A stretch of DNA of 64,000 nucleotides from Macrostomum lignano (Eukaryota). Location of the stretch: assembly GCA_002269645.1 (NCBI GenBank), contig NIVC01000152.1, positions 868,001-932,000 of the forward strand, in the 5' to 3' direction. Of this stretch, positions 18,408 through 62,370 are shown piece by piece (position 1 is the first letter of the stretch; every line of letters begins with the position of its first letter). The notes under the pieces are model-generated. The model made no database searches. It was not told the DNA's origin and worked only from the letters and a program-made list of their open reading frames with translations. Made by a program: the position numbers and the translations under genes.

Positions 18408-21430
<3,023 letters not shown>

Positions 21431-26700: not shown

Positions 26701-29700
26701 CGGCTTGGGAATACACAACCAAAGAATGTGGAATGTACTATAAAAATGGGAATTCGCCCAATTTAATGTATTTTCTAAATCTCAAGGCCACTGGAATATT
26801 TAAAAGTGAACAAAGTGCCCGTTACCGGACGCGAAACAAAAGTAACTCAGAACTCCTTAAGCGTCAGGAAAGGATTTTCATCGAGTTTCTCAACCAAGAA
26901 TTCTCTCATTTCCTGATCGGCCTTGCACAATCCTTCTTTACGACCACCGCGAGGAAGGGATTCCACTCTGCCATCAAGTCGAAAGTTGGCAGCGATTCGG
27001 AATGCGCTTGTTTTTCTTGATTTGCAAGATTCTTGCAGCTCCTGCGATGGCTGACCCTTGTTCAATCGCATCAGTCAGCTGCTGGCGATCTGCTACAGGA
27101 ATTGGTGGCGCCATTCAATGGGGTCGCTTTCAGGCCAAAGACGAGCAAACAGGGGAGAGAGGGACAGAGAGCTGTAAAATCTCAGTCCGATCCCCGTATT
27201 GAATATAACATTAATATTACTTTTTGCGGGCATCAATGTAGAATTTCTTATGCTTAGCACCTAGGTGCTAAGCATAATTTCTGCACTTGACAGGATGTGG
27301 AAGCAGTGTAGCCCTAAAATAGATTACACCGAATGCAAATGAAGCAGTGAAATGCATATTGGAAAATTCTCTATTGATGCCTCGCAAAAAGTAATATTAA
27401 TTACATTATTGTCATTAATGCAAGAGATTTCCGGGCATCAATGTCGAAAATTCCGGGCTCTGTGTTATTACATAGAATGCAGTTGAAATGTCTATGGCCA
27501 TTCTTTCTTTTGATTTGCGAGCTCTGGGCCATAGACGAAGTTTTGATGGTCCAGGTCTAGAGATGGACAGTAAAACTGAAGGAGCTAGAAAAATGCTAAA
27601 TGTATATTTTTCAAATCTGTCAGGACTAAGCTGTGCTTGAGTTCTGAAAATGATCAATCATTTAATTAATTATTCCAATCTGCCGGGAGAAATGGTTTCC
27701 GGTATGTCGACCGAAGAGCTGGCGTGGGTATCATCCGAGTCGAACAGCCGGTATTTGGAGGAACTGAGCGAAGAATTTTCGCGCAAGATAGAATCAGAAG
27801 AGATTCTCGACATTCCGGAGGACGTGATGCAAGAGTTAAATCAGCTTGAACGAGATGGAATACCGGACTCCTCCGCCCGGCAGATGGAGGACAATGTGAG
27901 CCGCTTCAAGACTTTTCTGGAGGAAATGAATCTGTCAACGGATCTGCTGCGAATTCCAAAGTCGATTCTGGCTAATTATTTGCGTTTCTTCTATTCGACA
28001 CTGCGAACAAAGGACGAGCGTCCTTGCTCGAGATCGTCTTGCTGAAGGACAAGTTGAGCAGGCTGCGCCAGCTCCATCGGTCAGTGTGAATTTCTCTGGA
28101 ACATTTCAAAATTGTACGTTCGATTTCCACGGCCTGAAAGACTAATTTAATTTAACTAACTGATCGTCTCTCTTTGCATGCTTATAAGCGCATAAACTTT
28201 GCTGTTATTTGTTGGTCTCTGTTTCACACTGTTGTTCTATTTCGCTCTATTACTGAAATAGAAAATACCATAGACAATTCAAGGCACGAATTGCCACATT
28301 GACGCCCGGAAAAGGGACGCTTAAGCCCGCAAAAATTAATGACAATGGCTTTTCCCATATTGAATGTCCAAAGTTATAGTCTATGGCCAAGCCTCCCTAA
28401 GTAGACTTTGCTAAACTGCTTAAATTCATGACTAAGGTGCGATCTGTGGCCTGGCTTTAATGTCTATGGCGTCCCGTTTTGATTGTCCAAATTCCCATTT
28501 CGATCGTCAAAAGCTACCAAAATCTGATCTTTTTAAATACTTAAACTACCGCTTCTCGTTATGATTAGCAACACCAGCTACTAACAATCCTACCTAAATT
28601 CCCCAGCTACATGTACATATCGATGTTTCTTTGGTCATTCAAGCATTTAACTAGCGGTTAGAGCCACTGCAGATTCTATATTTACCTAGATTTGTCACTC
28701 CATCATTTGCTAATGTATTTAGCGGCCGTCTCCGAGGCCCCGAAAACCCAGGGGGGGGGGTTGGGCCACAGACACCTCGTAGTTGCTGCTACTTATGCTG
28801 GAGAGCAGCAGAAGCTACAGTCTATGGTCTGAACCGCGGGGTTTTCGCGGAGTGGCATGGAATAGAATCTGTAGTTAGAACGTACACTATAAAAATTGAC
28901 ACCCTCACCTGGTAGTCAAACACCAGCACCTTGTGATTGTAGCGGTCCGTGGCGAACACCCGCCGGGAAGCCGGGTCCACCGCCACCCCGGTGACGCACT
29001 CGAATTCTCCTGGACCAGCGCCGCGCCGCCCGAACGCCAGCCGAACCTGGCCAGTCAGAGAGAAAGCCTGCAGTCGGTGATTGTTGGAGTCGGCCACGAA
29101 CAGGGCGCCGGTGCGGGGACAGGCCGCGATGCCGCGCGGCGCGCTCAGCTGGCCGACCTCGGCGCTGGGCCCGAGGCCGAAGACGCCACACGGTGCGCTG
29201 CGAGCCAAATAGGAGGCGTCCTCGCCGGCGGACACCGATAGGTCCGACGGGTCGCCGTTGCCGTCCAGGGACACCTGGAGAGGGGATTTGGGGATCGAAG
29301 CTAAATGAAGGCTTGAGTTGAGTTCAGACAGGGTATTCGAATAGACTGCCAGTCAATTCGCGTTTCAGTATTTTCCAAGAAACAAATATTAATAAAAAAC
29401 GAATCACTAAAACAAACCTGAAATGCAACCGGTCGATTCGCGCGCGACAGAACAAAAGTTCCCGACCTCTGGACCATTGTCAGCTGTTGATGCGGTTCCG
29501 ACGAGGAAGGCGACTCATCATCTGACGGTTGCTGCTGCTGTTGTTGCTGCTGCTGTTGTTGCTGCTGTTGTTGTTGCTGTTGATTATTGTGCTGCTGTTG
29601 TTCCTGCCTTCGGATTGCTGCATTCGCTGCTCGTCTTGATGCGTTAACCCTACCCCCTGCGCCTCCAGCTCCGACTCCCCGTTCGCCTGCGCCACTGCCG

Positions 29701-30785
29701 GCCGCGCCAGACGTTGCGTTGTCGGAGCTCAGTCTTGGCGGTCGTCGATTTCCGCGAAATGCCGGATTAGCAAAACTTATGAATGCGCCACCGCCGCCGC
29801 CGCCGCCGCCTCGGCTGTCATCCGAAGCGGAGAGATTTTGACGCTCGGGAATTCGGCTCTGACGCTGCGGCTGCTGCTGCCGACTGCCGGCGCGCTGAGG
29901 ATTCAACGGCGTCCGATAATTGTTGGCCACCAGCAGCTCCGCCGGGTAGCCGCCGCCCGACAGCGACGACTGGCGGCCCAAAGCCGCGATGGCCCGGCTG
30001 ACTGGCTCCGCGTTCACCGGCAACTCGACCGCCGCAGAACCGCCGACATCGGTCGCCACCTCGGACCAGTCGGCGACCGCGGCGCCGGCGAGTCTCCTGG
30101 CGGCGTCTTCGCAAGCGTCCAGTCGGCGACGGAGTTCTTCCACTGGCGCTCCCGGCGGCGGCAGCGACTCGCAGCAGCTGCTGGCGCTGGCCGCCTCCAC
30201 CTCCAGCGAGTCCAGCGCGGCGTAGAGGGACTCCAGCCGGCTTGCCGAGGCCGCCGCGATGTCGGCCAGCAGCTGCGCTCGTCGCTCCGCCAGCTGCTCG
30301 GCGAGTGAGTCTACAGCGGCAGCCAGCCGGGCGCTCTGTCTGGCCGAGGAGGCCTCGATATCGGCGGCCACGGAGCGAAGGCGGGCGGCCTCGGAAAGCA
30401 GGGCGGGCACGGCGGCGCTCAGCCGACTAGCCGATGCGTCGAGACGACGTCTCAGTTCCACCTCCGACTCTGGTGACTCAGTCGAGCTTTCAGCTACTTG
30501 ACGTCGATTCGATTGCGACTGCGACGGAGGCGTCTGCTGATGTTGCTGCTGCTGCACGCCAAGCAGTGCCGTGACTGTGAGGTTCCGAGGCAAATTTTCC
30601 GGGCCTCGGGCAGCCCGGCTGAGCTCGCGGCACAGCGGGCATCGGATTGTCCGCACTGACTCGTCGTAGATGTTCACCAGACAGGGCCGCAGACAGAAGG
30701 TGTGCTGGCAGGGCAGCAGCCGGGGGTCGGTGAAGCGACTCAAGCACACAGGACAGGTGAGCACATCCTCTACAGTCGTGCCCAT
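23754..30785 (-). CDS. RING finger / coiled-coil / 6x NHL-repeat protein (TRIM-NHL, NHL-1/abba-like), 766 aa
   Basis: complement(join(23754..24047,25930..26202,28909..29274,29418..30785)), all introns GT-AG phase 0. N-terminal C3HC4 RING (CPVC..LPCQHTFCLRPC..CPLC), Ala/Leu/Glu-rich helical region, Q18 tract, six NHL blades (e.g. FGAEGSGPGQFRYPWGAAV..YVADKKNHRVQVF). The ORF track starts at a TTG. The first ATG is 30785. Confidence 0.93.
24233..25635. repeat. Intronic minisatellite, 26-28 bp unit ggg(cc)atatctctattgattgggggaca
   Basis: ~50 copies in NHL gene intron 3 (24048-25929). Confidence 0.97.
26282..26332. other. Hairpin module ggtgtctcg..attgaccgaggcgaagccgaggtcaat..cgagacacc
   Basis: Nested inverted repeats read directly. 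The ccgaggcgaagccgagg core resembles, from recollection, ends of invertebrate non-autonomous Crypton-type elements. Confidence 0.5.
26850..27100 (-). pseudogene. IS630/Tc1-like transposase N-terminal HTH fragment, frameshifted
   Basis: DRQQLTDAIEQGSAIAGAARILQIK, then a frameshift, then KTSAFRIAANFRLDGRVESLPRGGRK...EMREFLVEKLDENPFLTLKEF. This is the typical paired-like HTH plus RGG linker. No DDE domain is visible. Confidence 0.65.
27650..28145 (+). mobile_element. Internally deleted Crypton (tyrosine-recombinase transposon) ORF
   Basis: N-terminal part (IPKSILANYLRFFYSTLRTKDERPCSRSS, 27650-28045) resembles the Crypton/DUF3504-associated N-domain. It abuts, in another frame, a C-terminal tail (SVNFSGTFQNCTFDFHGLKD*, to 28145) of the type ending Crypton proteins. 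The catalytic core is absent. Flanked by inner IRs 27408-27444 / 28296-28346. Confidence 0.65.
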
Positions 30786-35390: not shown

Positions 35391-37421
35391 CCATAGTGCA
35401 GAAGGACGGGTGTACGACGGAAATTTCCGTCGTACATTGAGGTTGGTTGTCGTACATGTCGTACATCGTTCATTTTTGCAAGGGCTCTTTGTCGTACATG
35501 TCGTACCGTCGTTGGCCACACTGTCACTGTCGTACATCTCTGACTAGAAAGCTATATGCATAGGGCGAAATCCAAAAACGTGGGATAAAACGGTAAAACA
35601 AATCTGCGGACATTCGATGGAAAGTAATGTATCTAAAAAAGGTTTTTGAAAGATAGATAGGTCTTTAGAAAATAGTTCTGGATAAAAACTATTGTTTTCA
35701 TGCTTTATATTGTTGAATAAACAAGAAAAAACCACAAAAAAGCATTTTGAAAGTCCGAGTTGACCGATTTGCAATTTTTTGTTTCACTTTTTTTCATTAT
35801 TAAACAATTAATTTTAAGACTTGTAGGCCTTAGAGAAGGCTAATTTTTTTACTACTTACAAAACAGAAAGTAATCTGTGTTTTACTTTTTATTCAATTCA
35901 AAAAGATGAAGTATTTCTAAGGATTTTAAAGTTTTTCTAAAACCATATAAACTCGCAAAAATTCATACTAATATAAAGTGCAAAGTTTGCCAGCAAACAT
36001 CTTTTTCTAAAAGTAAATATATCGCTAATTCCTTGTTGCAAAATAATCTTTAAGTTGTTTTCTTTCATTTAAATATCAACTTGCATAGCATTAGTATTTG
36101 TAATATGCCTATATTTAGACTTAAAAATTTTGGGTAAAAAATGGTACCACAAAATGTGAACCCGGCATCCAAATCAGATGCTTACTGTATGCTCATTAAG
36201 CGACGAAGAACAATGAAATTACACTAAAACATGTATCATCGCGGCGTGTATGCAGGAAAAAAAGAATTTTCCAAATCGCTTCAGTAGAAGCTGAGTAAAA
36301 TGCAATTTTCCAATCCTTATGGGAATTCCAATGTGTTAGCCGGCTTCCAAATCAGATGCTTACTGTATGCTTATTAAGCGACGAAGAACAATGAAATTAC
36401 ACTAAAACATGTATCATCGCGGCGTGTATGCAGGAAAAAAAGAATTTTCCAAATCGCTTCAGTAGAAGCTGAGTAAAATTCAATTTTCCGACCCTTACGG
36501 GAATTTGTATGTTTAAATAATAAACTTACGTTGAATACAATTTATTGCAAACGAACTCTACAAAATACACGTTGTCAAGAGTAACGAAAGTGATAAACAA
36601 ATAAAACCTTAAAATAATGTTAAATATGTTGTAGAATTATAGAGTGTAACATTATAATATAGTTAAAGTTAATAAAATACATTATTATAGCTTTTCAATC
36701 ATTTTCATTAGACTCATTTTAGGTCGTAATTAAACTTACCGTTTTAACAAATCATTTTATTAAAAATAAAGCTATACGAAAATAATTTGTGCTTTAATAG
36801 ACTTTTTTACTTTTTAAAAACTTGAATAAATTTATTTTATAGCTTTATTGCTTTCAAATTGCCAAAAAACGAATTTTCATAAAACTTGCCCCCGATTTTT
36901 GGATTTCCCCATAGGCATTTAAAAATACAATTTCGTTTTCATAATTAAATTAAATTTATTCAAAGTGCTTTTTACGAGGCACAAATAAAATATAATCTTG
37001 GCATACTTAATAATGATTTTTTATTATGTGGCACCAAATTTTACATTTTTATATTCAAGGCCACACAAATGTGCATCCGTTGTTTTAATCTTAACCTTGT
37101 TTATTTCTTTTTTGAAATGCGTATCGTTACCATTCATCGGCCGTCGGAAGCAGAAGCCCAAAGACGGCGACAATAATGCCAATTGATAAATTCATTTAAT
37201 TGAATCATTCATAATTAATATTACTTCAATTACTTGTAAACTTGTTATTACCACTTACAACTTATTATTACTCTTTGTCTGGGTCGGGAGTATGTGGGTT
37301 TCTGCATTGTAGTTTGTCGTACAAAAAAAAATTACTTAGTTCACTTGTGTCGTACTGTCGTACAGCAGGCTAAAACTGAAATTTGCCTTCCGTCGTACAC
37401 AGAAATCCTTCTGCACCATGG
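35391..37421. mobile_element. Non-autonomous TIR element, TIR cca(t/c)agtgcagaagga, 5-bp flank aaaga
   Basis: ccatagtgcagaagga at 35391 and tccttctgcaccatgg ending 37421. Subterminal gtacgac/gtcgtac arrays. aaaga at 35386-35390 and 37422-37426. Superfamily unresolved. Confidence 0.7.
36163..36490. repeat. Tandem duplication, period 178 bp
   Basis: aaatcagatgcttactgtatg...gctgagtaaaa recurs at 36171 and 36349. Confidence 0.9.
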
Positions 37422-38623: not shown

Positions 38624-41344
38624 GTTTGGGTTTGTTATTAATGGTAATAACAATATACCATGATAACAGCAATATAATAGTATAGATAGCAATAACAGTA
38701 ACCAAAATAAATCTTAAAAAAGCAACCTTTCATTTAACACAAGTATATGATAATTTGCTTATTTATTTCACAATTAATTGCAGGTACGGGAAAGATTTTG
38801 AACCTTAATTTGCAAAAATTAAACATTTTGTGTATCCATCGAGTATTTTTCCTAACTCAAAATTTTACGTTACTTTGAGGATTCAAAAAGATTTACTTTT
38901 ACATGCCACAATACAACAGCCAAATTTCCTTAAGGATATACTTTTTCAAAGAAATTTTGTTTGAACAAGAGTTTCTGAGAAGCTATTGCTACTTAAATAT
39001 ACGTTTTACCTACTTCTTCGAGTTTGCTTTGCTTACTAGACTCGAGTTTGCTAGACGAATACGAATACGTTTGTTTTGCTGGATTTTACATTAATTTATC
39101 TAACTAAAAATGGTCTTTTTATCTGAAAGCATGCGTTGCAGCAAACAATAATGAGATAACAAAACTTACCTGCTTTATTTTATTTAATCATTAGCCTAGA
39201 ATCTATCAAAGATCTATTTCATTCAAGATCCAATGGCTTTGTAATTCCTAAGATAAGATAGTCAATATATAGTAATAGTATTAGGCCTGGCTAGTATCTT
39301 GGCTAGGGCTGCTAGGCGAATGCATGCATACCATTCCTATTTAAAAATTGACTCCTTGAAATCATGCATGTGTCAAAACTATGCAAGGCAGCAAGTCCAA
39401 TGAATACAAAATCTACTACTTAAAATTTCTACTAGTAGTTCCTCTTAGTTTTATTTTTATTGTTATTTTTAATATACTATATTAGTATTTAAATATTTTG
39501 AATATTTGAATATATTCTTATTATTGAGATAGGCCTTATTTAGCATCACTCGTTTTCTTAGAAAGTATTGTATTTGAAACTATGCTATTTTTGTTTTAAT
39601 GAGTATAATATCAGTAATATTGTAAATATTATAAATATTATGAAATTTTATTTGTTTAAAACTGAGCTGAGAAAAGGGTATAAATACATAAGCAGAATCA
39701 AAAGGAAAAATAGGAAACCAACTTATCTGCCACTTGTTTCAAGCTTGAAATTGTTCTAGTATCTTGAAATTGAAGCCTTGTTCAATACTTACTGACTTAG
39801 TTATTTAGGTAGAAGCATTAAGAAGCCCCAAAATTGGGAAAGTTCAAACCATTCTTAGAAGAACAAGAAATCTAGATCTAGCTAGAATCTGAAAAGTCGC
39901 TTTAAGAAAGGCAAGAATCCTACCACAAGGTAGAGAAGTCCAGACTCAGAGTCTAAGAAACTCGCCTCAGGGTAGAATACCCAGCAAGTGACCCTCTGAT
40001 CCTGGGAACACCCAGGACTAAGAGAATAAAATCTGTAGAGGAATATAATGATAGAATAGATAGTGCCTAAAGACTGCTTAGGCCAGAAAGGACAATAGAA
40101 GTATATATGCTACCAATAGAAGTATATACACTACCAATAGAAGTACATGCGCTACTAGTGGAAAGGCAATTAATAACCAATAAGATCATTAAGAAGAAGT
40201 AACCCCTATTACAGCTAGTAGCATTGTGAGATTATTTATAAAGACAAAAGTAATCCCTATGTCAACTTTGGTGGCAGTGGTGAGATTTTGTATTATACAG
40301 GAACACCGCTACATCATTATATATTTGAATAATAATATTTTGAATAAATAATAATATAAATAATAATAAAAAATAATAAATATTCCACTTATGATCTAAG
40401 TTATCTGCCATTTTTACTTATTTTTTTCTTTTCACTGGGGTCTTGGATAAGATAATTCCCTGGAGAATTGACATCTATTCCCTTCCTAGGCCTATAAATC
40501 ATTTGACATTAGAGACATTTTAAAACTCTTGCCTTACTTTATCTATTAGGCCAACTTTATATATGACATGACACAAAATATTAGGAGCATGAGCATCAGC
40601 GTTAATAATGCCTTGGAAGTCTTTAAATGATCAATACAACACTAGGTATTATAAAATTTCAACTCTAAAGCTCACTGGGGCGAAGACTGTCTTCATTAAC
40701 TAGTATAGTAGTTGTAATATCACTTGGCTAGGGCCTATTAATAGGAATTAATAAACGTGCCTACTAGCCTATATATTAATAGTAATAAATGCATGCTTAG
40801 CCCAAATTAATTGGCACAAAGACTGAAAAATATTTTAAGTTTTTGTTCCCAAAAAGCCGAGACCCTAGGATATACCATGCTCACCAATTTTAGCATCAAT
40901 TTTACACCTCTATTAGCTTCTATTATGGGGGTTGGTTTTCGCTACTCTGTATTGGCCGATGACAAGGTCATTTGTATACAGTCTAGGGTCGTCCTCCATT
41001 TATATTTAGCTCACTGGTATCGAAATAGAAAGCATGAGGGGGTATCCTACTAACTGATAGAATGCGCGTTCACGAGCATCAATCAAAGCCAATTCTTCAT
41101 TCATTCAATCTATGGTTAGCCAAGTTGGTTAGCTATGTTCTCTTGTTTGCGAGTTTAGATCATTTCGCGTATTCGCCCAGTCTGTCCGCTTCGTTTGATG
41201 ATTGTTTCTGGAATCCTGGATTATGATAAACTGTGATTGAACTTGTGATTGAACTGGAATATAGTGCGACAAGTGATTTATACTTGATTGATTCATTGAT
41301 GTTTGATTGATTCATTCATTCAATAAAAACCATACTACCAAAAG

Positions 41345-43345
41345 ACTGGTGATGTGACTGAGTTTACTAGTGATGTGACCGCATAGACTGGTGAGGTGAC
41401 CATGTTGACTGGTGATGTGACCCTGTTGACTGGTGATGTAACCGTGGTTACTGGTGTTTTGACCAAGTTGACTTGTGATGTGACCGTATTGACTGGTGAT
41501 GTGACCATATTGACTGGTGATGTGACCGTATTGACTGGTGATGTGACCGAGGTGACTGGTGATGTGACCACATTGAATGGTGATGTGACTGCATTGACTG
41601 GTGATGTATGTGACCACATTGACTGGTGATGTGACCGTATTGACTGTTGATGTGACAGAGGTTATTGGTGATGTGACCACGTTGACTGGGTGATGTGACC
41701 ATATTGACTGGTGATGTGACAACGTTGACTGGTGATGTGACCGGATTGACTGGTGATGTGACCATATTGACTGGTGATGTGACCACATTGAATGGCGATG
41801 TGACTGCATTGACTGGTGATGTATGTGACCACATTGACTGGTGATGTGACCGTATTGACTGTTGATGTGACAGAGGTTATTGGTGATGTGACCACGTTGA
41901 CTGGGTGATGTGACCATATTGACTGGTGATGTGACCGAGGTGACTGGTGATGTGACAACGTTGACTGGTGATGTGACCCGATTGACTGGTGATGTGACCA
42001 CATTGACTGGTGGTATGACAATGTTGACTGGTGATGTGACAGATGTGACTGGTGATGTGACCATGTTGACTGGTGATGTGACTGTATTGACTGGTGACGT
42101 GATTGAGGTGACTGGTGATGTAACTGCGGTGACTGGTGTTTTGACCACGTTGACTGTTGTGACCACGTTGACTGGTGGTGTGACCGGATTGACTGGTGAT
42201 GTGACCGTATTGACTGGTGATGTGACCGAGGTGACTGGTGATGTGACCACATTGACTGGTAATGTGACCACATTGACTGGTGATGTGACCGAGGTGACTG
42301 GTGATGTGACCACATTGACTGGTGATGTGACCGCGGTGACTGGTGATGTGACCACGTTGAATGGTGATGTGACTGCGTTGACTGGTGTTGTGACCACGTT
42401 GACTGGTGATGTGACCCCGACGACTGTTGATGTGACCGTATTGACTGGTGATGTGACCGAGTTGACTAGTGATGTGACCACGTTTACTGGTGATGTGACC
42501 GTATTGACTGGTGATGTGACCGAGGTGACTGGTGATGTGACCACATTGAATGGTGATGTGACTGCATTGACTGGTGATGTATGTGACCACATTGACTGGT
42601 GATGTGACCGTATTGACTGTTGATGTGACAGAGGTTATTGGTGATGTGACCACGTTGACTGGGTGATGTGACCATATTGACTGGTGATGTGACCGAGGTG
42701 ACTGGTGATGTGACAACGTTGACTGGTGATGTGACCGGATTGACTGGTGATGTGACCACATTGACTGGTGGTATGACAATGTTGACTGGTGATGTGACAG
42801 ATGTGACTGGTGATGTGACCACGTTGACTGGTGATGTGACCGTATTGACTGGTGACGTGACCGAGGTGACTGGTGATGTGACTGCGGTGACTGGTGTTTT
42901 GACCACGTTGACTGTTGTTGTGACCACGTTGACTGGTGGTGTGACCGTATTGACTGGTGATGTGACCGGATTGACTGGTGATGTGACCGGATTGACTGGT
43001 GATGTGACCGTATTGACTGGTGATGTGACCGAGGTGACTGGTGATGTGACCAAATTGACTGGTGATGTGACCACATTGACTGGTGATGTGACCGAGGTGA
43101 CTGGTGATGTGACCACATTGACTGGTGATGTGACCGCGGTGACTGGTGATGTGACCACGTTGACTGGTGATGTGACCCCGACGACTGTTAATGTGACCAC
43201 GTTGACTGGTGATGTGACCGAGTTGACTGGTGATGTGACCGAGTTGACTGGTGATGTGACCACGTTTACTGGTGATGTGACCGTATTGACTGGTGATGTG
43301 ACCGAGGTGACTGGTGATATGACCCGACGACTGGTGATGTGACCT
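41345..43345. repeat. 21-bp minisatellite (actggtgatgtgacc + 6 variable nt) with higher-order duplication
   Basis: ~95 units. A ~758-bp block is duplicated (ORFs 41910 and 42668 are offset by 758). The same indel variants recur in each block. Confidence 0.95.
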
Positions 43346-44849: not shown

Positions 44850-46300
44850 TAATTAATATAACAATAGCTATTAAGTTGCTAATTAATTGTAAAAAGATAG
44901 TGGATATAATAGAGATTCAATGTTGTGTGGCCATCTTAGTCTTATACCCTTTTTTAATAGGGATCATATAATAAAAGAATACAATAAAGAAAATTATTTA
45001 ACAAAAAGAGAGCAGTTCAAAATGTTTTTGAAAAAAGCTTGTACGAGCCTAAGCTCGTAGGGCCTAAGCAAATTAGCAGAATGATCACAATGCCTAATAG
45101 GCAAAGTGTATCATAAAGTATTGAAAATATAAATACAAACAGTTTTATATAATACAAGCTCATAATAAGTCCAATATATTAAATATTTACTTAGCAAGAG
45201 ACAAGTGCACTACTATTAGTAACATAATAATTTAGCAACTACGCCTGTCAGTCCAAAATGATTTACTATAGTATAAGAAATTGTGTTGTCTTATTATGAA
45301 TGTGTATACTAATGATTGACTTTGATTTATCAGTGTGCTATGGTTTTCAAATGCTAAATTGATTGATCTATGTCTAAGGCTGCCACATGCTTATAGAAAA
45401 GACTAGAACTTACATGTTTAAATATGAGTCACATTTCTTAGAAATGGAAACCAATTAAACAAAATACCTATTATTAGAACCTTATAATAAACTACACATA
45501 ATTATTATAGCTAAGGATCTTGACTAAAGTTAGAATAAATAAACTAGATTCAAATTACAGAATAGTTACAATACCTTTTTTATTACATGACAAATTTTTA
45601 AGACTAAGGTATCTTTTTAGGCAAGTGAGATTCATCAAATAAAATAAAAATACCAAAATAGCTTTTAAAATCCCAAATTTAAGCCAGGCCTAATAATTTT
45701 TTTACTAGAGGCCAATGCTTAGTCACTAGTAGCAAGTTGATTTGCTAAAAATCAATTTGCTGAAAGTAGGTTTTTTTGTTGAAAGTTTTATCTTGACTTC
45801 TAACTCATCTTATATATAAATATGATGGACCTTATATAATGGTATATTCAGTATTGTAAAATAGAAAATTAAATAAATAAATGAACAAGGTCCAGCTATG
45901 ACAGGTTGACATCTAGCACTAGCTGCATTGTCCATAGAATGTTTATAGTCCAGCAGCGGCATCTGCTTGATATTGCCTTTGCAGTTGGCTATGAGTATGT
46001 CAATTATGCAATAATATGTCTACTATAAAAGCCGCAACATATTGGCTAAGGCAATGATAGTGTGTTGTGCTTGTCATCATCATGATCATGTTAATAGAAG
46101 CCTTTTGGCAGATGGTGATGCTCTAGTCAAATGAGTTTTGCAAATTTTCCAAAAAGAAAGTAAAAAAGTAATTAAAAAATTGTTGCTTTTGTAGTAATAG
46201 TAATAGATAATATACTAATAAAGTATTTTTAGTCAACCATTATAATCTTCTGTCTTCTTTTTATGGTTCTTTCTACCCACAATCATTGGGCTTTAATTTA

Positions 46301-49300
46301 ATGACTATGAAGAAATCAAATAAATTTCCTGAGAAAAATACTGAAGAAGAGGAAATGCTGCTGCAAAATTATGCATTGTTAAAGAAATTGGTAAGTTAAA
46401 TGGATTGTTTCTTTGGCCTAAAATTGTCTTTCCTTAAGCTGAGCTTCTATTCTAGCAGATCTCCAAGTTAAGACCCTACTCTACCACATCTCCAGGTTGA
46501 GACCCTACTCCACCACATCTCCAGGTTGAGACCCTACTCTACCACATCTCCAGGTTGAGACCCTACTCTACCATATCTCCAAGTTGAGACCCTACTCTAC
46601 CACATCTCCAAGTTGAGACCCTACTCTACCACATCTCCAAGTTGAGACCCTACTCTACCATATCTCCAAGTTGAGACCTTACTCTACCACATCTCCAAGT
46701 TGAGACCCTACTCTACCACATCTCCAGGTTGAGACCCTACTCTACCACATCTCCAAGTTGAGACCCTACTCTACCATATCTCCAAGTTGAGACCTTACTC
46801 TACCACATCTCCAAGTTGAGACCCTACTCTACCATATCTCCAAGTTGAGACCCTACTCTACCACATCTCCAAGTTGAGACCCTACTCTACCACATCTCCA
46901 AGTTGAGACCCTACTCTACCATATCTCCAAGTTGAGACCTTACTCTACCAAATCTCCAAGTTGAGACCCTACTCTACCACATCTCCAGGTTGAGACCCTA
47001 CTCTACCACATCTCCAAGTTGAGACCCTACTTTACCATATCTCCAAGTTGAGACCTTACTCTACCAGTCTACCAGATCTCCAAGTAAGGACCCTACTTTA
47101 CCAGATCTCCAAGTTGAGACCCTACTCTACCATATCTCCAAGTTGAGACCATACTCTACCCGATCTCCAAGTAAGGACCCTACTCTACTATCTGCTCTGC
47201 TTTAGGATCAATTCACCGGGTCAAGGTTAACCTTAGATCTACAAAATTATATATTTTAACTGTGCCTGTCAATCGCCGCAGAGAAAACAGCTGACTGAGC
47301 TGCGCAGCCGGCAAGCGGCCGAGGCCGAGACAAATCGCGAGAAGGAGGAAACGCCGGTTAAGCCTAACGAAGATGCCAGGGTGGCGGCTGAGCGCCTGGT
47401 GAAACTGGGCAAAATTAAAATACAAAGCGCCTGCCCGCCTCGGGTATTGATGAAGAAAGGCCGCGATTCGACTGGCCCAGTCTCCGCTTATCGGCCCTAC
47501 TCGCCTACTGGCGGCGGCTCTGACGAGATTCAACAGCATCAGAATCAGCTGCAGCAGCCGCCAGCCAAGCGGCCGCGCTCGAATCTCTACGACAGCTTCG
47601 TTTCTGGCGGCGTACAGGATCCGGCGCCAGCTACCCCGTCAGGGAACAGCGCCGAGCCCAATAAGCCCCGTGGCAACACTCTATTCGTGCAGGGCTACAA
47701 TATCCATCCAGATATGCTCCGGTCGGCGTTCAGCCCGTTCGGCCCGATCTCGCGCATCGCTATGGAGAATCGCGCTGGCGGCCTCGCCGGCCGGTTTGGC
47801 GACTCCAAAGCCAACAACAAGCCGAAGGCGTTTGTCACGTTCGAATCGGAAGACGACGCCGCTAACGCTATGGATCAGGTGTGCTACTTAATATTTTTAT
47901 TAATTAGCTGGTAGATAGATAGATAAAAAGACGCTATAGAGTCAAAAACCTTAGCGCTCACACGCTCGCGAAAAAGCTCAGAAAGGCAGGAAGTGGGCTC
48001 AAGTGTGGTGAGGTAGATGGCTTGAAGGTCACTAGCAAAGTTCTTTAGAAGCGTCTCAGTGCGCGCATGTCCGCGACGGTATGGGTCGCATAGACATGCA
48101 TGCGCAACCTCCAAAATTCGGTCGGCCATGCGACTTAGTTTTAACAAAAATGCGACGTAGTTTTTGGCCAAAAATGCGACTTACATGTAAAAAAACCTAA
48201 AGCAAAATTAATGCAACATTGGGTAAACAGCAGGAGTAACTATGACTGTCTTATTAAGCCAAAATGCCTCGTCAGCTACTTAGTACTACTACTGGGTAAT
48301 TTTTTGGGTGGGTATTTTTGCGACTTCCTTGGTTGGCCACCAAATCGGCCAACTCGGCCGACTGTTGCGCATGTATGCGCATAGCGGATTGAGCACGACA
48401 ACCGCAAGGGGGTTCATTTCCCCTCGAACGTAGCTGCGTAGCACATTGCCGCGAAGTCGCCGCGCTCTCAGGAGGGAGCTCACTGGTGGGACGCCGGAGC
48501 GAGCAGCGAGCGCACGGTTTGACAGCCTTTCAGGGTAGCGGAGATCGAGAGCAAACCGCAGCAAAGCTCTGAAGGTGGCGTCGAGAGCCTGGTTGCGAGA
48601 TTCCGTGACCGGCAGAGCTTCGAGACCGTAAAGGAATATCGGCAGCACGACAGCACAGAAAATCCGGATTTTAAGTTGGTCAAATTAGCTGATAGTAGTT
48701 GTTAATAGTCATAGTGTTTGGTAATATTTATTTAAGTTCTTAATGTTGGATTTTTATGCAAAAACGGTCGCGAAGTTTTTACAATTGTTTTTTTATTGAT
48801 TCTGTTAATTTTTGCACTGTTAAGCACAGATCAAAACATAAAATTTCACTTAACTTCGAATTGGAATTGGAATTGGAACTCTGTTGACTAAGCAGTTTAC
48901 GTATTGTATTTGCGTTGTTTGTTTTTGCTGAAACATTTGCTTAATATTATCTGCTTTCTACTGTAAGTAGGTGGAATCGCTTATTAGCGACTTAGTAATT
49001 AAAAATTAGTTTCGTGCCTTATGGCTGGGGTGGCCTAGGGGGTAGCGGGTGGCGCGGCCGGCGGTCCAGGGGCAAAGAGGGGTTGGTAAGAGTTCGGAGG
49101 CGGGGCGGGCCGCTCTAGTCTACGCGAGGCCTCACACATTCCTTATTTGGTAAGCGGCCGGCGCCGAGAAAATTCTATTTATGGTCAAAACTAAACCTGA
49201 GAGACTTAGAAGTATTGAATAGTTTGGGCTATGCTACCAACTATGGCTTAGTCGGTACGGGCGGCAAGATTATGACGCAGAAATTTTATCTGGTCCCGGC

Positions 49301-51964
49301 CGTTTATAGAAGTTTCACTAGCTGCCGGACCCCTCGCATCCTTCACTTGCTAACTTTTACCCCTCTGTAGAGTTTAGCGGTTATTCGTTTCTGTTTATGT
49401 GCTTTTATCGCTTAGTAAATTTTTATTAACCGGAAAAAACGGATGCAACTGTCAAGTTTGCCTGCAATTCTATTAATTTCTGGTGTTTCTACACTAATAG
49501 AAAAAGTCTATGTTTTTTATCTGAATTTGGTTTTGGTTACCCTGACGATGAATTTTGCCTGTCACCTGAATAGACGGCAGCTTAGAGGGGGCGCCAGCTA
49601 CAGAAGGGGCTCCAGCTACAGAAAAGGGCGCCAGCAATAGAGGCGCCATCAACATAGTCAGGCGCTGCTAGCAAAAGAGGCGCCGGCTACAGAAGGGGCT
49701 CCAGCTACAGAAAAGGGCGTCAGCAATTGAGGCGCCATCAACATAGTCAGGCGCTGCTAGCAAAAGAGGCGCCGGCTACAGAAGGGGCTCCAGCTACAGA
49801 AAAGGGCGTCAGCAATAGAGGCGCCATCAACATAGTCAGGCGCTGCTAGCAAAAGAGGCGCCGGCTACAGAAGGGGCTCCAGCTACAGAAAAGGGCGTCA
49901 GCAATAGAGGCGCCATCAACATAGTCAGGCGCTGCTAGCAAAAGAGGCGCCGGCTACAGAAGGGGCTCCAGCTACAGAAAAGGGCGTCAGCAATAGAGGC
50001 GCCATCAACATAGTCAGGCGCTGCTAGCAAAAGAGGCGCCGGCTACAGAAGGGGCTCCAGCTACAGAAAAGGGCGTCAGCAATAGAGGCGCCATCAACAT
50101 AGTCAGGCGCTGCTAGCAAAAGAGGCGCCGGCTACAGAAGGGGCTCCAGCTACAGAAAAGGGCGTCAGCAATAGAGGCGCCATCAACATAGTCAGGCGCT
50201 GCTAGCAAAAGAGGCGCCGGCTACAGAAGGGGCTCCAGCTACAGAAAAGGGCGTCAGCAATAGAGGCGCCATCAACATAGTCAGGCGCTGCTAGCAAAAG
50301 AGGCGCCGGCTACAGAAGGGGCTCCAGCTACAGAAAAGGGCGTCAGCAATAGAGGCGCCATCAACATAGTCAGGCGCTGCTAGCAAAAGAGGCGCCGGCT
50401 ACAGAAGGGGGCGCGAGCTAAGGGGTGTCAGCTACATAAGGCAGACTAGACAGGGTCCTAGTAAGTACTGGAGGCTGGCTGCAACGAACTGCTTTTCAGT
50501 GAGTTCATCATGGCTCATAACTAAGCTTGCCGTCAACCCTTGTCAAAAATACACAGTTTGGTAAAATCTTACAAGTACCAGTTTACTCGTAGTGTTTCGT
50601 GTGCACATGCGCGCACAAGCAGGTGAGACAGATACTGGGTACTTTGCTTTCCCCCTGTCCCTGTGTTCTCATTTTTTCACCTACTCGTAGCTGGCACTCG
50701 CATGGAGCTTTGAAAGATTTTATCGTCTCTTTTTTTATTTCAATCAGTGCGCGATCGCCAGTTTCATGCAGTTCAAGTCGCCTTTCTTATCAGATTGCCT
50801 TGCCAGCTAATTTGTAGAAGGCTAAGTTGGGTGGCTAGATAAATAGTCGAGGGAAAGGTGAGGGTAGGGGGAGGGCTGGTCATGGCCTGTCTGAACAGGT
50901 GATTCTAGCACGCGACTGCAGTTTTTGGCGCGCAGTATTAAGAAAATGTGCTAAGATACAAATTCTAAATGAGAGAGTTGGACTTGGCTAGACTTTGTAT
51001 CTGAGGTTTGGGCATTTATGTAGCTTAGCTATCTTACAATTTTGTTACAAAGCTTGTTTAGTCAACACTGCAGCTCCATAAAGTTGTTATTTAGCAGTGG
51101 TACAGAAATTGCTACTGCATAACCTTGTTGTGCGTATGTGTATGATGGAGTTTCTTTGGCTAGCGATTACCATGCCGTTAAAATATTTTTAAAACTCGTG
51201 ATTATCCATAATTATCGCAACTTCACTCCAACCAACTCGAGAAATACCGTCATCAGCTACTTCCCTCACTCAACTCAGAGTACCTCAGTCAACTCAAAGA
51301 GTCCCTCAGTAATCTCGAAGAGTCCCTCAGTCAACTCGATGAGTCCCTCACTCATCTCAGATAGTCCCTCACTCATCTCAGAGAGTCCCTCACTCAACTC
51401 AGTCCCTCATTCTATACCGGTGTTTATTATATTCGATTTCGCTAGGCTCCTATGCTGCGGCGTAACTCAACTTTCCAACACCTCCCTCCCAATTATCATC
51501 AGCTGGATGGCCAGCTGGTCAAAGGCAGCGTTCTGAGCGTTCGCCTGGCAAGGAAGCAGCCGTCAGCTGGCGGTCAGGGATTCCGCGGCTACGGAGGCCG
51601 CCCGATGCCTCCTCAGCTGCCTGGCATCTCCGACTGGACGTCGGACTCGGGCGGCGGCGGCGGCGGCGGCAGGTACCGACTCGGTCTTGGCTTTGCCAGC
51701 CCGGACGCTCCAGACGCCGCTGGCGCTAGTAGTCCGCGCTACGCGCCACCGGACACTCCGACTAGTGCTGGCGGCGCTGAACTAGGAGAAGCGTCAAATC
51801 TGACTCCCGGCGCCAGGTCGACAGAGGGGCCGTCATCAATTGGCGAAGATTCCGACAGCCTGCGAGATCAGCAGCGGCGACCACTACAATACTCGGACGG
51901 AGTGTTCGTGTCCTCGGATCCGATGGAGGAGGACGCAGTTGTGGAACTGGATGAGGTCATGTGA
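46301..51964 (+). CDS. NELFE: Negative elongation factor E (RRM protein), ~382 aa
   Basis: join(46301..46390,47282..47878,51503..51964), GT-AG phase 0. N-terminal FPEKNTEEEEMLLQNYALLKKLRK, RSNLYDSFVS motif, and an RRM (GNTLFVQG...KAFVTFE...LDGQLVKGSVLSVRLARKQP). No RD dipeptide tract. The start could be 46301 or 46307. Confidence 0.9.
46447..47190. repeat. Intronic minisatellite, 29 bp unit actctaccacatctccaagttgagaccct
   Basis: ~25 copies fill NELF-E intron 1 (46391-47281). Confidence 0.96.
47960..48655 (-). mobile_element. 5-prime-truncated RTE-like LINE fragment, split by a MITE
   Basis: LPIFLYGLEAL...ALLRFAL..ERLSNRAL..SSLLRARRL.GNVLR is the typical post-RT C-terminal region. Removing 48095-48377 plus one TSD rejoins ..VVLNPLC to DPYRRGHARTETLLKNF... 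Confidence 0.75.
48095..48377. mobile_element. Second copy of the 430-730 MITE
   Basis: Near-identical internal sequence. Flanks cgcataga (48087-48094) and cgcatagc (48378-48385). Confidence 0.85.
49585..50410. repeat. 89-bp tandem repeat, ~9 near-identical copies
   Basis: cagaaggggc recurs at 49601, 49690, 49779 and onward. The unit is built from degenerate ggcg.cagc.a subunits. Lies in NELF-E intron 2. Confidence 0.95.
51268..51410. repeat. 21-bp minisatellite agtccctcactcatctcagag
   Basis: ~6 copies near the 3-prime end of NELF-E intron 2. Confidence 0.85.
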
Positions 51965-53678: not shown

Positions 53679-54981
53679 TCAGTTGGCGCCACGGTCGCCC
53701 TGGCGGCAGAGCTCCAGCATGCACTCCTCCGAAGCCTCATCGATGCCGCTAGCCTGCAGCTCCTTGAAGATGCCCTGCAGTTTGTTCTTCAACTCAACCT
53801 TGGACGAGGCGATCAGCATCTTCTGTCTGATTGGGATGCCGTCGGGACCCCTGGACACAGTGGAAATCAATTAATGCATTGTATTTTTAGATTCTAGAAG
53901 AAAGATCCCAATTATTGGGTTGAAGCGGGTTAGACTTCGGTCGAGAGTTTTCCCTCACTAGAAATCTCAGATCATTGTGGATCCCACCAACTGATGCCTA
54001 TCAATGGGGATCCCACCAACTGATGCCTATCAATGGGGATCCCACCAACTGATGCCTATCATTGGGGAATCCCAACAACTGATGCCTATCATTGGGAATC
54101 CTAACAACTGATGCCTATCATTGGGAATCCCAACAACTGATGCCTATCATTGGGGAATCCTAACAACTGATGCCTATTATTGGGAATCCCAACAACTGAT
54201 GCCTATCATTGGGAATCCTAACAACTGATGCCTATTATTGGGGAATCCCAACAACTGATACTTATTATTAGGGAATCTCAACAACTGATGCCTATCATTG
54301 GGGATCCCACCAACTGATGCCTATCATTAGGAATCCCAACAACTGATGCCTATTATTGGGGAATCCCAACAACTGATGCCTATCATTGGGGATCCCATCA
54401 ACACACAGTTAAAAAGGCAAAACAACTAACCAAGACACAAAAAACGAGCCGGCTGCGCTTTTGCTTGGACTCTTCAAATTCGAAGACCAAGTCATAAACG
54501 GCATAGCAGCCAACTTTCCTGTTCACCGAGTCCTTCAGATCTTCTATGAATTCATTGTAGGTGGCGTCAGCTGGGGCCTTTTTCAAAACGCCAATCTCCT
54601 TGTCATTATTGACAAAGCCAAACAGCAGATACCTGTAGCAGTGGTTGGTCTTGATCTCCTGGAAGGTGTCAAGCACCTCCTGCTGAACTTTCACTCCGGA
54701 AGCCATGCAATAAATTGGGTTAGAAATAAGTTAACAAAATCTTACTCAAACTGCTTCATATGCAACAAATACCTTGTAGTTTTTGAAAAATTATTTTTCA
54801 TTTTTCTAAATTAAATATAGTAAAACAAAGCAATTCATTCAATTAAATGCTTGAAATTTATACTAAGAATTTTATTTGGTTGATTTAAACAAAAAATAAA
54901 CACTAGAACAAAAGAACTAATCATTTAATCAAATCCACTAAAATATGAGCCTAAACTTATTAATGGCATAACTTTTACCAT
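53679..54981 (-). CDS. ADF/cofilin, ~148 aa (assembled sequence carries apparent 1-bp lesions)
   Basis: (M)ASGVKVQQEVLDTFQEIK...YRYLLF...CYAVYDLVF...RLVF(VSW)GPDGIPIRQKMLIASSK...KELQA. Model: ATG at 54981-54979 | intron | 54703..54431 | intron | 53850..53679, or the ATG at 54706. Needs one T removed from the T6 run (a54439-54444) to keep frame. Confidence 0.88.
53980..54398. repeat. Intronic minisatellite, 29-30 bp unit cccaacaactgatgcctatcattggggaat
   Basis: ~14 copies in the cofilin intron 53851-54430. Confidence 0.95.
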
Positions 54982-57900
54982 ATTGACAAGTTTTTATCCA
55001 AATAAACATTCAACATTTTAATTGCAACCTGAAAATTAGATCAAAAAGACGATTTTTAGTATATAGATGTGGAACTAAACTAAAAATTTAAGTCTTATGT
55101 CTCTAATAATATTATTATCAAGTCTTTTATTACATAAAAATTGAATAGATAATAAGTTTAATACAAACATTAATATTATATATATATATACTAACTTTGT
55201 CATAGTTTTAATTGAAATTCTAAAAAATGCAACCTAGTTTTTCAACACATTGATCCCTAATCCTTTTTGTGACTTCCTAATCTTTTTGCAACCTAGTCTG
55301 CTTTTTTTGTTTATTCTTTTTAATTTGTGCTATTTACCTGTTTTTGTTTTGCTTTTTTGTAGTACCTTTTTAATTTTTCTTTATCTTTCTATGCTAGTCT
55401 TCTTTTACACTTTTGATTATCAATTTTATAACTTAACCTTATAGTTTATATCAGCCAAATCAGCTGGGTTGGCTAGTAGTGCAATTGCAAAAACAGTTAT
55501 AGATGCCTTATATGGAATGTTTTAAATCGATAACAGTCTAATTTAAGTAAAAATGGCTTGACAAGACTTAATGTTTATAGCAAAAAAAGGATAGGCCATT
55601 GCCAAAATTTTATTCTTATATACACTTGCTACCTTAAATATGGCATACACTTTTTTATTATGTATACCTCTATATTACTTTTGTTTCTATTATTTATTCT
55701 ATTAAGCCTATTTTAATATTTGCTACCTTGGGTTTAGCAGTTAATGTGGATAAAGTTTTCATTAAACAAATTTGATTGCAAAGGATGAAGGTTTGAATGG
55801 TTTGAAGGATTGAATGGTCCAAAGGCAAAATGCCTATAGAAAAACAGTTAGAGGTCAATAGTAGGTCTATTTATATAGTCATTTTGTCTCTTATCAAGTT
55901 AACTGCTAGTTGACAAACTTAATATTTATTAATTAGTACTTAAAAGATTGATTAATATATGCATAATTGTTTACATAAAAAACTATTTTAAAATAGGGCT
56001 TGGCTTAGGCCTAGTTTTCTTATACTTAGTGAAACATCATTTGAAGAGCCAATGTTATGCCTTTTTCAATTTTAATTGTGATTTCTCAATATATTTTGTT
56101 TGTACCTATCAAAGTCTTTCTTTCTCTTACAAAATGACAATAGACAAAACAATCTACACCTATAGGTTTAAATACTAACCAATTTGGCAATAGAGATTTA
56201 CATTGGACACATTTGGCAAAAAAGTAAATTCAGCAACAATCTTGTTGAATTGAGTAGTAATAAAGGAAACAATGGTATATCTTATTATTTAGTATAATCA
56301 TATCAATCAATATGTATTAACTTTGCTTTCTACCCAAGTTTGTTTCATCTATTTTTTACCATAAACTTTCTAAATATACTTTTTAAGAAATGTTTATTCA
56401 TTCTTATAGCCAATATAACTTATAGCCAAAGAAAATAAATTGTAAACTACAAAATTTTATAATTCTAAAGTTAGTTTTAGAGATATATACAGAGACATAT
56501 ATAACTTTTAAGGCATTTTAATTTGAATTTAAATTAAATAATATCATTTTTATTTTTTAGCTGACATGCACTTAATCAAAACTTTTTGGCATACATAGTT
56601 ATTGGTATACGTTTGTAATTGTTCAATTTTTGTTTGGCCATACACTTTGCATAATTTAGAATATGGTGGTTATTGATTCAAGGCCATAGTTTAGAATGAC
56701 ATATATGCCAGGATTTCCCAGTATACAATAAAGGTACTTACTATTTTTCAGCATATAGCAAGCATATCCCAATGTACATAACATAGTAGATACATTGTGT
56801 CAATGGCAATTTTTTTGCATTGGCATACAACCTTGCATACAAATGAGGTCTTGTAATTTTTCCGATATTAAACCTGGTATATACTAATATATAATCTAAA
56901 CTATAGATTCAAGGTAGGCCTAAACATTGTAGAAAATATAGGCCCCCTTATTAGATTATAATTAAAAAATTTTATAACTTCTTTAAGTTTAATACATACA
57001 AAAATGAAACATTTTTTTAATTTAAAATATTTTTTGCCTTTAATATATCTTTTAAAATTTATTATCACTACACTAACAATAGGGGCCTAAATAAAAATTA
57101 TTTTTTTTTACTAAATTTCAGCTTATATAAGCGCTAGTGCTTAATTAAAACAAAAGGTAACAAGTCAATTTGACAAAAGTTGATTTGCCAAAAGTCAATT
57201 TTTTAAAAGCAGGTTGTTTCACCAAAAGTTGTTTTGCCAAAAAATGACCAAATAAATAAATAAAATAAAATAAATAAAGAAATAAAATTGTAAATGTTAG
57301 ATTTAAAACATGTATTTTGTAAATTGACTTTTTCTAAAAGTTTTTTTGGCAAATCATCAAGTATTCATTTAAAATGATTACATTTTGGTTTAAAAGTAAA
57401 ATTCTTTCCTAATGCAGAGTGCATAGGCCTATGCACATTTATTAGTCCAAAAAGTGTTTTTGCACAGTTGATATGATCAACCTAGGCCTAGGCCTTTATC
57501 TTCATAAAAAATTGCAACTTTTAGACCTAGTCTAGACTCTAGCCTATCATTTAAATCTAAAGGCATTGGACACGAATAGAATATAAAGTGTAACAGTAGG
57601 CCTAGCCTAGTAAACTGCAGAGGTTAAAAAAATCATTAACAATTAAAAAGCAAACCAAGTTATTTCGTCGTTAAGGAGAATGCAGACTAATTTTGCAAAG
57701 TGTTATTTTTAGTGCGCACATACGTCGTATGTAATTAAATTTATAAAATTAGAATTGCTGCTCCGATCATGCTGATGCATACATCTGACTAATCATATAC
57801 ATACGACCATGCGTGCGGAATTCAGAGTTCTGCAGTTGAAGAAGAATAGAAGATGGGTTTATAGCTGTCCCAAGATAGGAAATATTCGCTTTTTAAAACA

Positions 57901-61161: not shown

Positions 61162-62370
61162 TAGGGGTCGGATGTGATCACGATTGTGATCACAATTTTG
61201 TGAATTCACGACCATTTTTTTCACGATTGTTATTTCCTTGAAACCCATTCACGACCGCTTCCGGACATTTGCCCTCCGGCACTTCCCCTCCGGCACTTGC
61301 CCTCCGGCACTTCCCCTCGGCGGCGTTTGCCCTCCGGACATTTGCCCTCCGGGACATTTCCCCTCCGGACATTTGCCCTCCGGACATTTCCCCTCGGGGA
61401 CATTTGCCCTCGGGGACATTTGCCCTCCGGACATTTGCCCTCCGGCACTTCCCCTCCGGCACTTGCCCTCCGGCACTTCCCCTCGGCGGCGTTTGCCCTC
61501 CGGACATTTGCCCTCCGGGACATTTCCCCTCCGGACATTTGCCCTCCGGACATTTCCCCTCGGGGACATTTGCCCTCGGGGACATTTGCCCTCCGGACAT
61601 TTGCCCTCCGGACATTTGCCCTCTGGACATTTCCCCTCCGCACATTTGCCCTCTGCAAATTTACCCCCTCGCACATTACTCACCTCACCTCCTCCTGTAC
61701 CCACCCGTCGTTCCTCCAGCACCAACCTCATCCTCCCGCCTCTTGCATCCATCAGGTTCTTCTCCAGCCAACAACTCATCCTTTTCTAGTAAGCAATATA
61801 TACCCGCGCCCTACCCTATCCCCAGCCTTACCTGTAATTTTCCAGAGGGGAAATGTCCGGAGGGCAAATGTCCGGAGGGGAAATGTCCCCAAGGGCAAAT
61901 GTCCCCGAGGGCAAATGTCCGGAGGGCAAATGTCCCCGAGGGCAAATGTCCTCGAGGGCAAATGTCCTCAAGGGCAAATGTCCGGAGGGGAAATGCCGGA
62001 GGGCAAATGTCCGGAGGGCAAATGCCGGAGGGCAAATGTCCGGTAGCCATTTACGACAGTCGTGAATTTCCGCTTTATTACATTTTTATTAGAAGTATAA
62101 CTTTTCTAGTTGGTTTACCAAAATATATGAACACACATGTGTAAAAGAGTAATAAATTTTAATTTTGTTGACTTGACAGCATTACTGAGTACTATTATCA
62201 ATTTATAAATATTTCTTTTCTTGTTTTGTTATTTTCAACACTTGTAACTTACGAGCTCAAAATATGTGTATGCAAATATAAATTCACAATCACAATCACG
62301 ATCACGCCCGACTTTAAAAATTTTACGAAATTTCATGCCCGACCAAATTTTTCTGCTCATCCGACCTCTA
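61162..62370. mobile_element. Non-autonomous hAT element, 8-bp TSD cttcttag
   Basis: TIR taggggtcggatg / catccgacctcta. Exact TSD at 61154-61161 and 62371-62378. Confidence 0.87.
61256..62048. mobile_element. Foldback/MULE-like element with tandem-repeat arms, nested in the hAT element
   Basis: Arrays of ggacattt(g/c)ccctcc at 61260-61650, inverted at 61845-62043. 9-bp flanks attcacgac (61247-61255) and atttacgac (62049-62057), one mismatch. Confidence 0.75.

Follow-up and report, generated by a model that had tools for sequence, protein, structure and literature searches.

The window analysed here comprises 64,000 nucleotides of Macrostomum lignano contig NIVC01000152.1 from GCA_002269645.1, the assembly known as Mlig_3_7, in which the record position equals 868000 plus the window coordinate. 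Its minus strand carries a gene for ADF/cofilin (PF00241, ADF-H domain; MASGVKVQQEV...CRQGDRGAN). As read from the sequence, coding exon 1 runs from codon 2 (GCT) to a donor reading TG/GTTAGT (54431-54703; slashes mark splice junctions throughout), and it is followed by a GT...CAG intron of 580 bp (53851-54430) that holds 14.7 tandem copies of a 29-nt unit (53971-54402) and by coding exon 2 (53679-53850), whose stop codon TGA occupies 53681-53679. The ADF-H domain extends over the whole protein, with precomputed PF00241 matches on both the product of a paralogous copy, P0001, which begins ASGVKV at the same base as exon 1, and that of the window copy, P0002. Alignment with the paralog revealed a homopolymer of six T residues in the window copy (54439-54444) in place of five, and this run shifts the reading frame, so that the window copy is annotated as a protein of only 81 aa (P0002, Mlig031117g3) that starts at an internal, out-of-frame ATG (54504). 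Removing one T from the run gives, after splicing, a product of 148 aa with 100% identity to P0001. The additional T is either a homopolymer error that escaped correction or a true change that makes the copy a pseudogene. The paralogous copy, g1, lies on NIVC01001154.1 (L001/L003), with its junction region at about 133,040-133,060, and is ~99% identical to that in the window, the 865 columns of the alignment containing 12 substitutions; collinearity between the window and the paralogous contig stretch (L003) is lost beyond window position 52609.

The convergent neighbour of cofilin is a NELF-E-like RRM gene on the plus strand with exons at 46268-46390, 47282-47878 and 51503-51964. Its product of 393 aa is identical to P0006, a match that was obtained with the full spliced query, the raw RRM ORF having matched nothing. 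Both introns of this gene hold tandem arrays, of 29-nt units in intron 1 (46447-47188, 25.3 copies) and of an 89-nt unit in intron 2 (49590-50410, 9.2 copies, 99% identity). A third copy of the gene exists (L005/L006), and no cofilin sequence was found at that locus. Elsewhere, the window has plus-strand exons (18638-19171 and 20858-21430) of a PBX-type homeobox gene with a PBC domain and a KN homeodomain, and a TRIM-NHL-like gene with RING and NHL repeats (28822-30784, minus strand), which has its own genomic ATG at ~30784 and a start devoid of text resembling a spliced leader (SL). Two further regions, 41312-43342 and 61190-62144, are GC-skewed and of low complexity, with several frames open on both strands and only spurious low-complexity Pfam matches, and are probably simple repeats.

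Directly 5′ of the cofilin Ala2 codon the minus strand reads ...cttatttctaACCCAATTTATTGCATG/GCTTCCGGAGTG, or in wider context ...gagtaagattttgttaacttatttCTAACCCAATTTATTGCATG/GCTTCCGGAGTGAAAGTT..., with an ATG at 54706-54704, GCT at 54703-54701 and CTAAC at 54723-54719. The published M. lignano SL is 35 nt long, CGGTCTCTTACTGCGAAGACTCAATTTATTGCATG (PMC8629364). Comparison of the two showed that the 14 nt at 54717-54704 (minus strand), CAATTTATTGCATG, are an exact match (14/14) to the last 14 nt of the SL, and that the 17 nt at 54720-54704 have 16/17 identity to its last 17 nt. An earlier note on this DNA had reported SL-like sequence at the cofilin start, and the exact match directly 5′ of GCT bears this out; the Macrostomum SL end given there, and the 16/17 identity derived from it, proved right when set against the published SL, and the CTAAC branch-like motif that it placed before the tract is present. 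No SL likeness was found 5′ of the 54720-54704 match, nor were the 5′ 22 nt of the SL found within the 64-kb window. Another Macrostomum species with an SL ending ...ACCCAATTT was rejected as the source, as the sequence is that of M. lignano NIVC01000152.1.

The match is far from what the composition of the window would yield. The exact SL 14-mer occurs once, against an expectation per window of 0.01 from shuffles and 0.0013 from base composition. Among the 2366 ATGs on both strands of the window, the runner-up has an exact SL suffix of 8 nt versus 14 nt at cofilin, and the best other 17-mer scores 13/17 versus 16/17. All other SL-suffix matches in the window were at chance level, with lengths of 7-8 nt (31120, 23626, 5819 and others), and the SL matches with two mismatches (including 2551, 36538 and 38771) were also at chance level, with 4 found and 1.74 expected. 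At 36538-36549 (plus strand) there is an exact 12-nt SL fragment, CAATTTATTGCA, which is followed by AAC in AT-rich sequence with no evident gene; ~0.02 such fragments are expected per window, and this one, though odd, is probably due to chance; it neither ends in ATG nor lies at a recognisable acceptor. No SL-like text was found at the start of RPL17 (L002:436).

Comparison with other versions of the same gene was informative as to the origin of the tract. Three of the 12 substitutions between the window copy and its paralog lie inside the 13 nt that end at the junction (54716, 54711 and 54710), and in each case it is the window that has the SL base. The probability of such clustering is ~7e-4, or ~2.5e-5 if the direction of the changes is included. 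The paralog (L001) reads ...TATTTGCTGCATG/GCT (cccTATTTGCTGCATG/GCT), which is SL-like over its last 5-6 nt only. An additional version is provided by the protein model P0003 (UniRef100_A0A1I8J914, n=2 in M. lignano), a member of the same 90% protein cluster, which begins PICLQ/ASGVKV. Going by its accession series, which is older than that of the Mlig_3_7 proteins (A0A267...), we take P0003 to be an earlier model from the older ML2 assembly, which shares its worm line and PacBio data with Mlig_3_7. Read back into nucleotides, its start becomes CCT ATT TGC YTN CAG/GCT, giving a source text of cccTATTTGC(T/C)TNCAG/GCT in which the PIC codons CCT ATT TGC are the native bases of the paralog L001. 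The acceptor in this model is a canonical CAG, it has the same length as in both Mlig_3_7 copies, and it fits the published M. lignano trans-acceptor motif [T/C]TNCAG (PMC8629364). When the versions are set beneath the end of the SL (...CTCAATTTATTGCATG) without gaps, as cccTATTTGCyTnCAG for P0003, cccTATTTGCTGCATG for copy g1 and cccAATTTATTGCATG for the window, the SL text extends leftward from the junction from one version to the next while the length remains constant.

These comparisons, together with the polishing method described below, point to a native text of TATTTGC(T/C)TGCAG, a trans-splice acceptor, beneath the 13-nt tract AATTTATTGCATG at 54704-54716 that matches the SL 3′ end at every base, the native sequence of the window copy being reconstructed from its paralog and from P0003. 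The adjoining outron heptamer CTAACCC (54717-54723), which includes the branch-point-like CTAAC, is the same in the window and in L001; by this comparison it is native, and its chance matches stretch the SL likeness to 16/17. SL position -15, a T, was not copied at the cofilin site, where a C stands, although position -13 was. In addition, the P0001 CDS is annotated as 5′-partial with Ala2 as its first codon, immediately past the assembled ATG, and therefore the annotators' SL-trimmed reads begin at GCT, a position at which splicing needs an AG that is absent from both assembled copies.

We consider it very probable that the 13-14 nt resembling the SL exist only in Mlig_3_7, as assembly text overwritten by RNA-seq polishing, and are not part of the worm genome. 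The use of RNA-seq in correcting Mlig_3_7 is documented, as the assembly was polished by Pilon v1.20 with Illumina DNA reads (aligned with Bowtie) and RNA-seq reads (aligned with STAR) (PMC5730564). The STAR setting --alignEndsType EndToEnd is given in that paper for transcriptome mapping, the mode for the polishing step not being stated there. The same authors trimmed the 35-nt SL, ATG included, and mapped the remainder of each read (PMC5730564), a procedure that results in a CDS which is 5′-partial from Ala2, as in P0001. Under this explanation the native cofilin pre-mRNA would have an ordinary outron ending ...CTAACCCTATTTGC(T/C)TGCAG/GCU, and the 35-nt SL ending in AUG would be trans-spliced onto GCU (Ala2) and supply the initiator Met (M-A-S-G-V...). 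RNA-seq reads that start inside the SL would then be laid ungapped over the outron end, presumably through end-to-end alignment by STAR, and with RNA coverage of cofilin far above DNA coverage, the DNA reads would likely be outvoted and Pilon would swap genomic bases for SL bases. Since most SL-bearing reads would cover the positions nearest the junction, those positions would be overwritten first, with overwritten lengths of 13 nt in the window cofilin, 5-6 nt in its paralog and 1-2 nt in copies of the NELF-E-like gene. At 54690-54730 (NIVC01000152.1:922,690-922,730), where the assembly has AATTTATTGCATGGCT, the native sequence would read ...TGCAGGCT. The altered bases are indeed SL bases, placed without gaps and running from the junction, over the last 13 nt in the window and the last 5-6 nt in L001. 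In Pilon polishing with transcript alignments, assembly bases are likewise replaced by the majority base of the aligned reads, and the case here would be an RNA-seq polishing artefact in which the SL forms a non-genomic 5′ extension of the reads and its sequence is thereby transferred to the end of the outron. Two observations speak against such an artefact. The T at SL position -15 was not copied, and the same polishing did not correct the T6 frameshift, 260 nt downstream; to accommodate the latter one would have to add the assumption that reads over it favoured the T5 copy in mapping.

A second gene in the window has comparable damage. The trans-splice acceptor trinucleotide of the NELF-E-like gene (46263-46265, plus strand) is ATG in the window, CTG in the paralog L004 and CAG in the paralog L005. 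The 5′-partial CDS in the window starts 2 nt after cttctttttATG/GT and is preceded by a polypyrimidine tract, and the bases at -3 and -2 are the AT of the SL. In L004 (1496-1498), which lies on the contig of the cofilin paralog, the text is ctatttCTG/GT, where the base at -2 is the T of the SL, whereas in the third copy, L005 (1496-1498; Mlig031282g1, NIVC01001476.1), it is ctttttCAG/GT with the acceptor intact. All three CDSs are 5′-partial, and each begins 2 nt past the trinucleotide. A native CAG at this site was predicted from the overwriting model before L005 was seen, and L005 has CAG. We infer from these sequences that the ATG at 46263-46265 is a second case of the same artefact, and its shorter overwritten tract fits an expression of the NELF-E-like gene that is presumably below that of cofilin. 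Overwriting of the acceptor by RNA-seq polishing had been among three options raised in the earlier note, and it is the one upheld by our analyses, given the documented polishing, the normal acceptor in P0003, the lack of SL-specific bases in the paralog and the like damage at another trans-splice site of Mlig_3_7. The evidence for overwriting comes from two genes in five copies, damage beyond cofilin having been observed in the one further gene examined, and we found no published account of trans-splice acceptor AGs erased by the SL terminal ATG in Mlig_3_7.

A different explanation of the tract is that it represents a genuine genomic relic of the SL, in which an SL-bearing cofilin cDNA recombined with, or gene-converted, the locus and thereby fixed the SL 3′ end and its ATG. 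Relic spliced leaders in dinoflagellates are retroposed SL-bearing cDNAs, and the cofilin tract resembles them in being a partial SL directly 5′ of a coding region in genomic text, as well as in the place of its truncation, since the 17-nt match starts right after an AG inside the SL (GAAG/ACTCAATTT...). A relic would account for a match that is far beyond chance and in exact register with the start codon, and SL sequence ahead of a coding gene is reported from another M. lignano locus: what was originally published, from ML2, as the SL RNA gene is placed by mapping at the 5′ end of Mlig013257.g1, a trans-spliced coding gene (scaf577:45,663-48,770, Mlig_3_7; PMC8629364). The SL text at Mlig013257.g1 may be an artefact of this sort or an actual insertion, and that locus leaves room for genuine SL-in-genome cases in this species. 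At cofilin, however, a relic is very unlikely, as it would need four separate short tracts (13, 5-6, 2 and 1 nt) in two genes, all starting at the junction, and every one of them would destroy the AG required by an annotated trans-splice site. The signature of a cDNA (intron loss, a poly(A) remnant, target-site duplications) was not found; the gene keeps its 580-bp intron, lacks a poly(A) or any other mark of retroposition, and has no A-run at its end. In addition, CAG is present in P0003, taken to be an earlier model of this line, the sole source with the SL-specific bases is the RNA-seq-polished assembly, those bases being absent from both the paralog and P0003, and a technical route by which they could have arisen is on record. 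The cofilin tract is very probably no relic of the dinoflagellate type, from which it differs also in that tract length changes from copy to copy with distance from the junction and in that other versions have an intact acceptor, and the recombined SL-bearing cDNA proposed in the earlier note finds no support. We see a slim chance that the tract is truly in the DV1 genome and that in this flatworm, a hidden polyploid, trans-spliced genes repeatedly undergo gene conversion at their 5′ ends by SL-bearing cDNA. If so, the SL AUG would be fixed in DNA with the acceptor abolished, and the locus would be the first metazoan counterpart of the dinoflagellate relics.

The third option of the earlier note, a native acceptor that mimics the SL and has gained a single base (TTGCAG to TTGCATG), was correct in its premise, as the native (T/C)TGCAG suggested by P0003 and L001, of the motif [T/C]TNCAG, does resemble the SL end TTGCATG, and the T6 run shows that the window copy has a homopolymer indel elsewhere. 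Mimicry implies a native AATTTATTGCAG/GCT in which only the T is spurious, whereas replacement implies TATTTGCTTGCAG. The indel did not stand up to comparison, as the distance from the conserved CCC to GCT is equal in all versions, which means that bases were replaced and not inserted. A one-base gain also leaves unexplained why the SL-specific bases at 54716, 54711 and 54710 are missing in the paralog, and the AG-to-TG change recurs at the NELF-E-like gene; we regard the probability of this reading as slight. Scarcely any probability attaches to the view that the assembly is correct, with its SL likeness a coincidence and cofilin starting at its own genomic ATG through an upstream acceptor or a cis exon. 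ATG GCT TCC... does form an intact start as assembled in both Mlig_3_7 copies, and the AG at 54742-54741 (gagtaag/atttt) could act as an upstream acceptor. Against this, the chance expectation of the tract is ~0.001-0.01 per window, the paralog's annotated transcript begins at GCT and not upstream, P0003 has no ATG at the site, and the differences from the paralog are directed toward the SL.

With overwriting of the assembly text as the preferred explanation, the start codon of cofilin can be considered. The published SL ends in AUG (...TTGCATG), and it is established that flatworm SLs end in an AUG that is usable as a start codon (Cheng et al. 2006, cited by PMC12582326; also PMC10468722). 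An AG before codon 2 with no in-frame ATG is seen in the sequence implied by P0003 and not in the literal text of either Mlig_3_7 copy, and we attribute the missing AG and the present ATG in both assembled copies to the artefact. Because the frame 5′ of codon 2 in the native sequence (…N P I C L Q) would be without an ATG, the SL terminal AUG would have to be the initiator, giving the N-terminus MASGV. Indirect support thus exists for a cofilin mRNA with SL trans-splicing immediately 5′ of codon 2 and with the SL AUG as the source of its Met, and the suggestion in the earlier note that the Met may come from the SL gains from the paralog CDS being 5′-partial from Ala2 and from the reconstructed native sequence. 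In these respects (an SL ending in AUG, an acceptor adjoining codon 2 and a native sequence with no in-frame ATG) cofilin would correspond to the SL-AUG initiation known from flatworms. It would be nothing unusual among such genes, MASGV being the canonical cofilin start and use of the AUG being deduced from annotation and sequence.

The earlier note had also proposed a cis exon as a source of the Met. A 50-nt stretch ending in ATG/GTAAAA exists as it was written, at 54979-55028 on the minus strand (ttttcag/GTTGCAATTAAAATGTTG...CAATATG/gtaaaa), and is a candidate on sequence grounds for an ATG-only exon. ATG-only first exons are known from ADF/cofilin genes such as C. elegans unc-60 (PMC3875643) and plant ADFs (PMC11374638), in which the junction right after the initiator codon corresponds to the position of the trans-splice acceptor in M. 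lignano cofilin. In unc-60 and the plant ADFs the Met comes from the cis exon, whereas in M. lignano cofilin it apparently comes from the SL, in place of that exon. Acceptors common to cis- and trans-splicing have been reported in parasitic flatworms (PMC12582326). The paralog has ATG/gtataa at the site of the candidate exon, and conservation of the stretch does not exceed that of the flanking sequence. A further ATG lies upstream within it, in a different frame from its terminal ATG, and as ATGGTA is expected ~42 times per window, the motif alone is without weight. Use of this upstream ATG-only exon by cofilin therefore appears unlikely.

Our results matter chiefly for the reading of Mlig_3_7, an assembly that serves widely as the reference of a regeneration model and whose trans-splice acceptors may be systematically damaged. 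If overwriting is general, then acceptor-motif statistics would be biased, and in this context the motif [T/C]TNCAG was seen in only 9551 of 21754 trans-splice regions (PMC8629364). General overwriting would also produce spurious genomic ATGs at 5′ ends, false SL-before-gene loci among the BLAST matches of the SL to the genome, and errors in promoter, outron and guide designs built on such bases. For the biology of M. lignano the finding has little weight, since with the disappearance of the SL relic it is known flatworm biology that is left. The biology that remains at the cofilin locus is a known principle, comprising SL trans-splicing, the SL AUG as initiator and the conserved position of the cofilin intron directly after the initiator Met.
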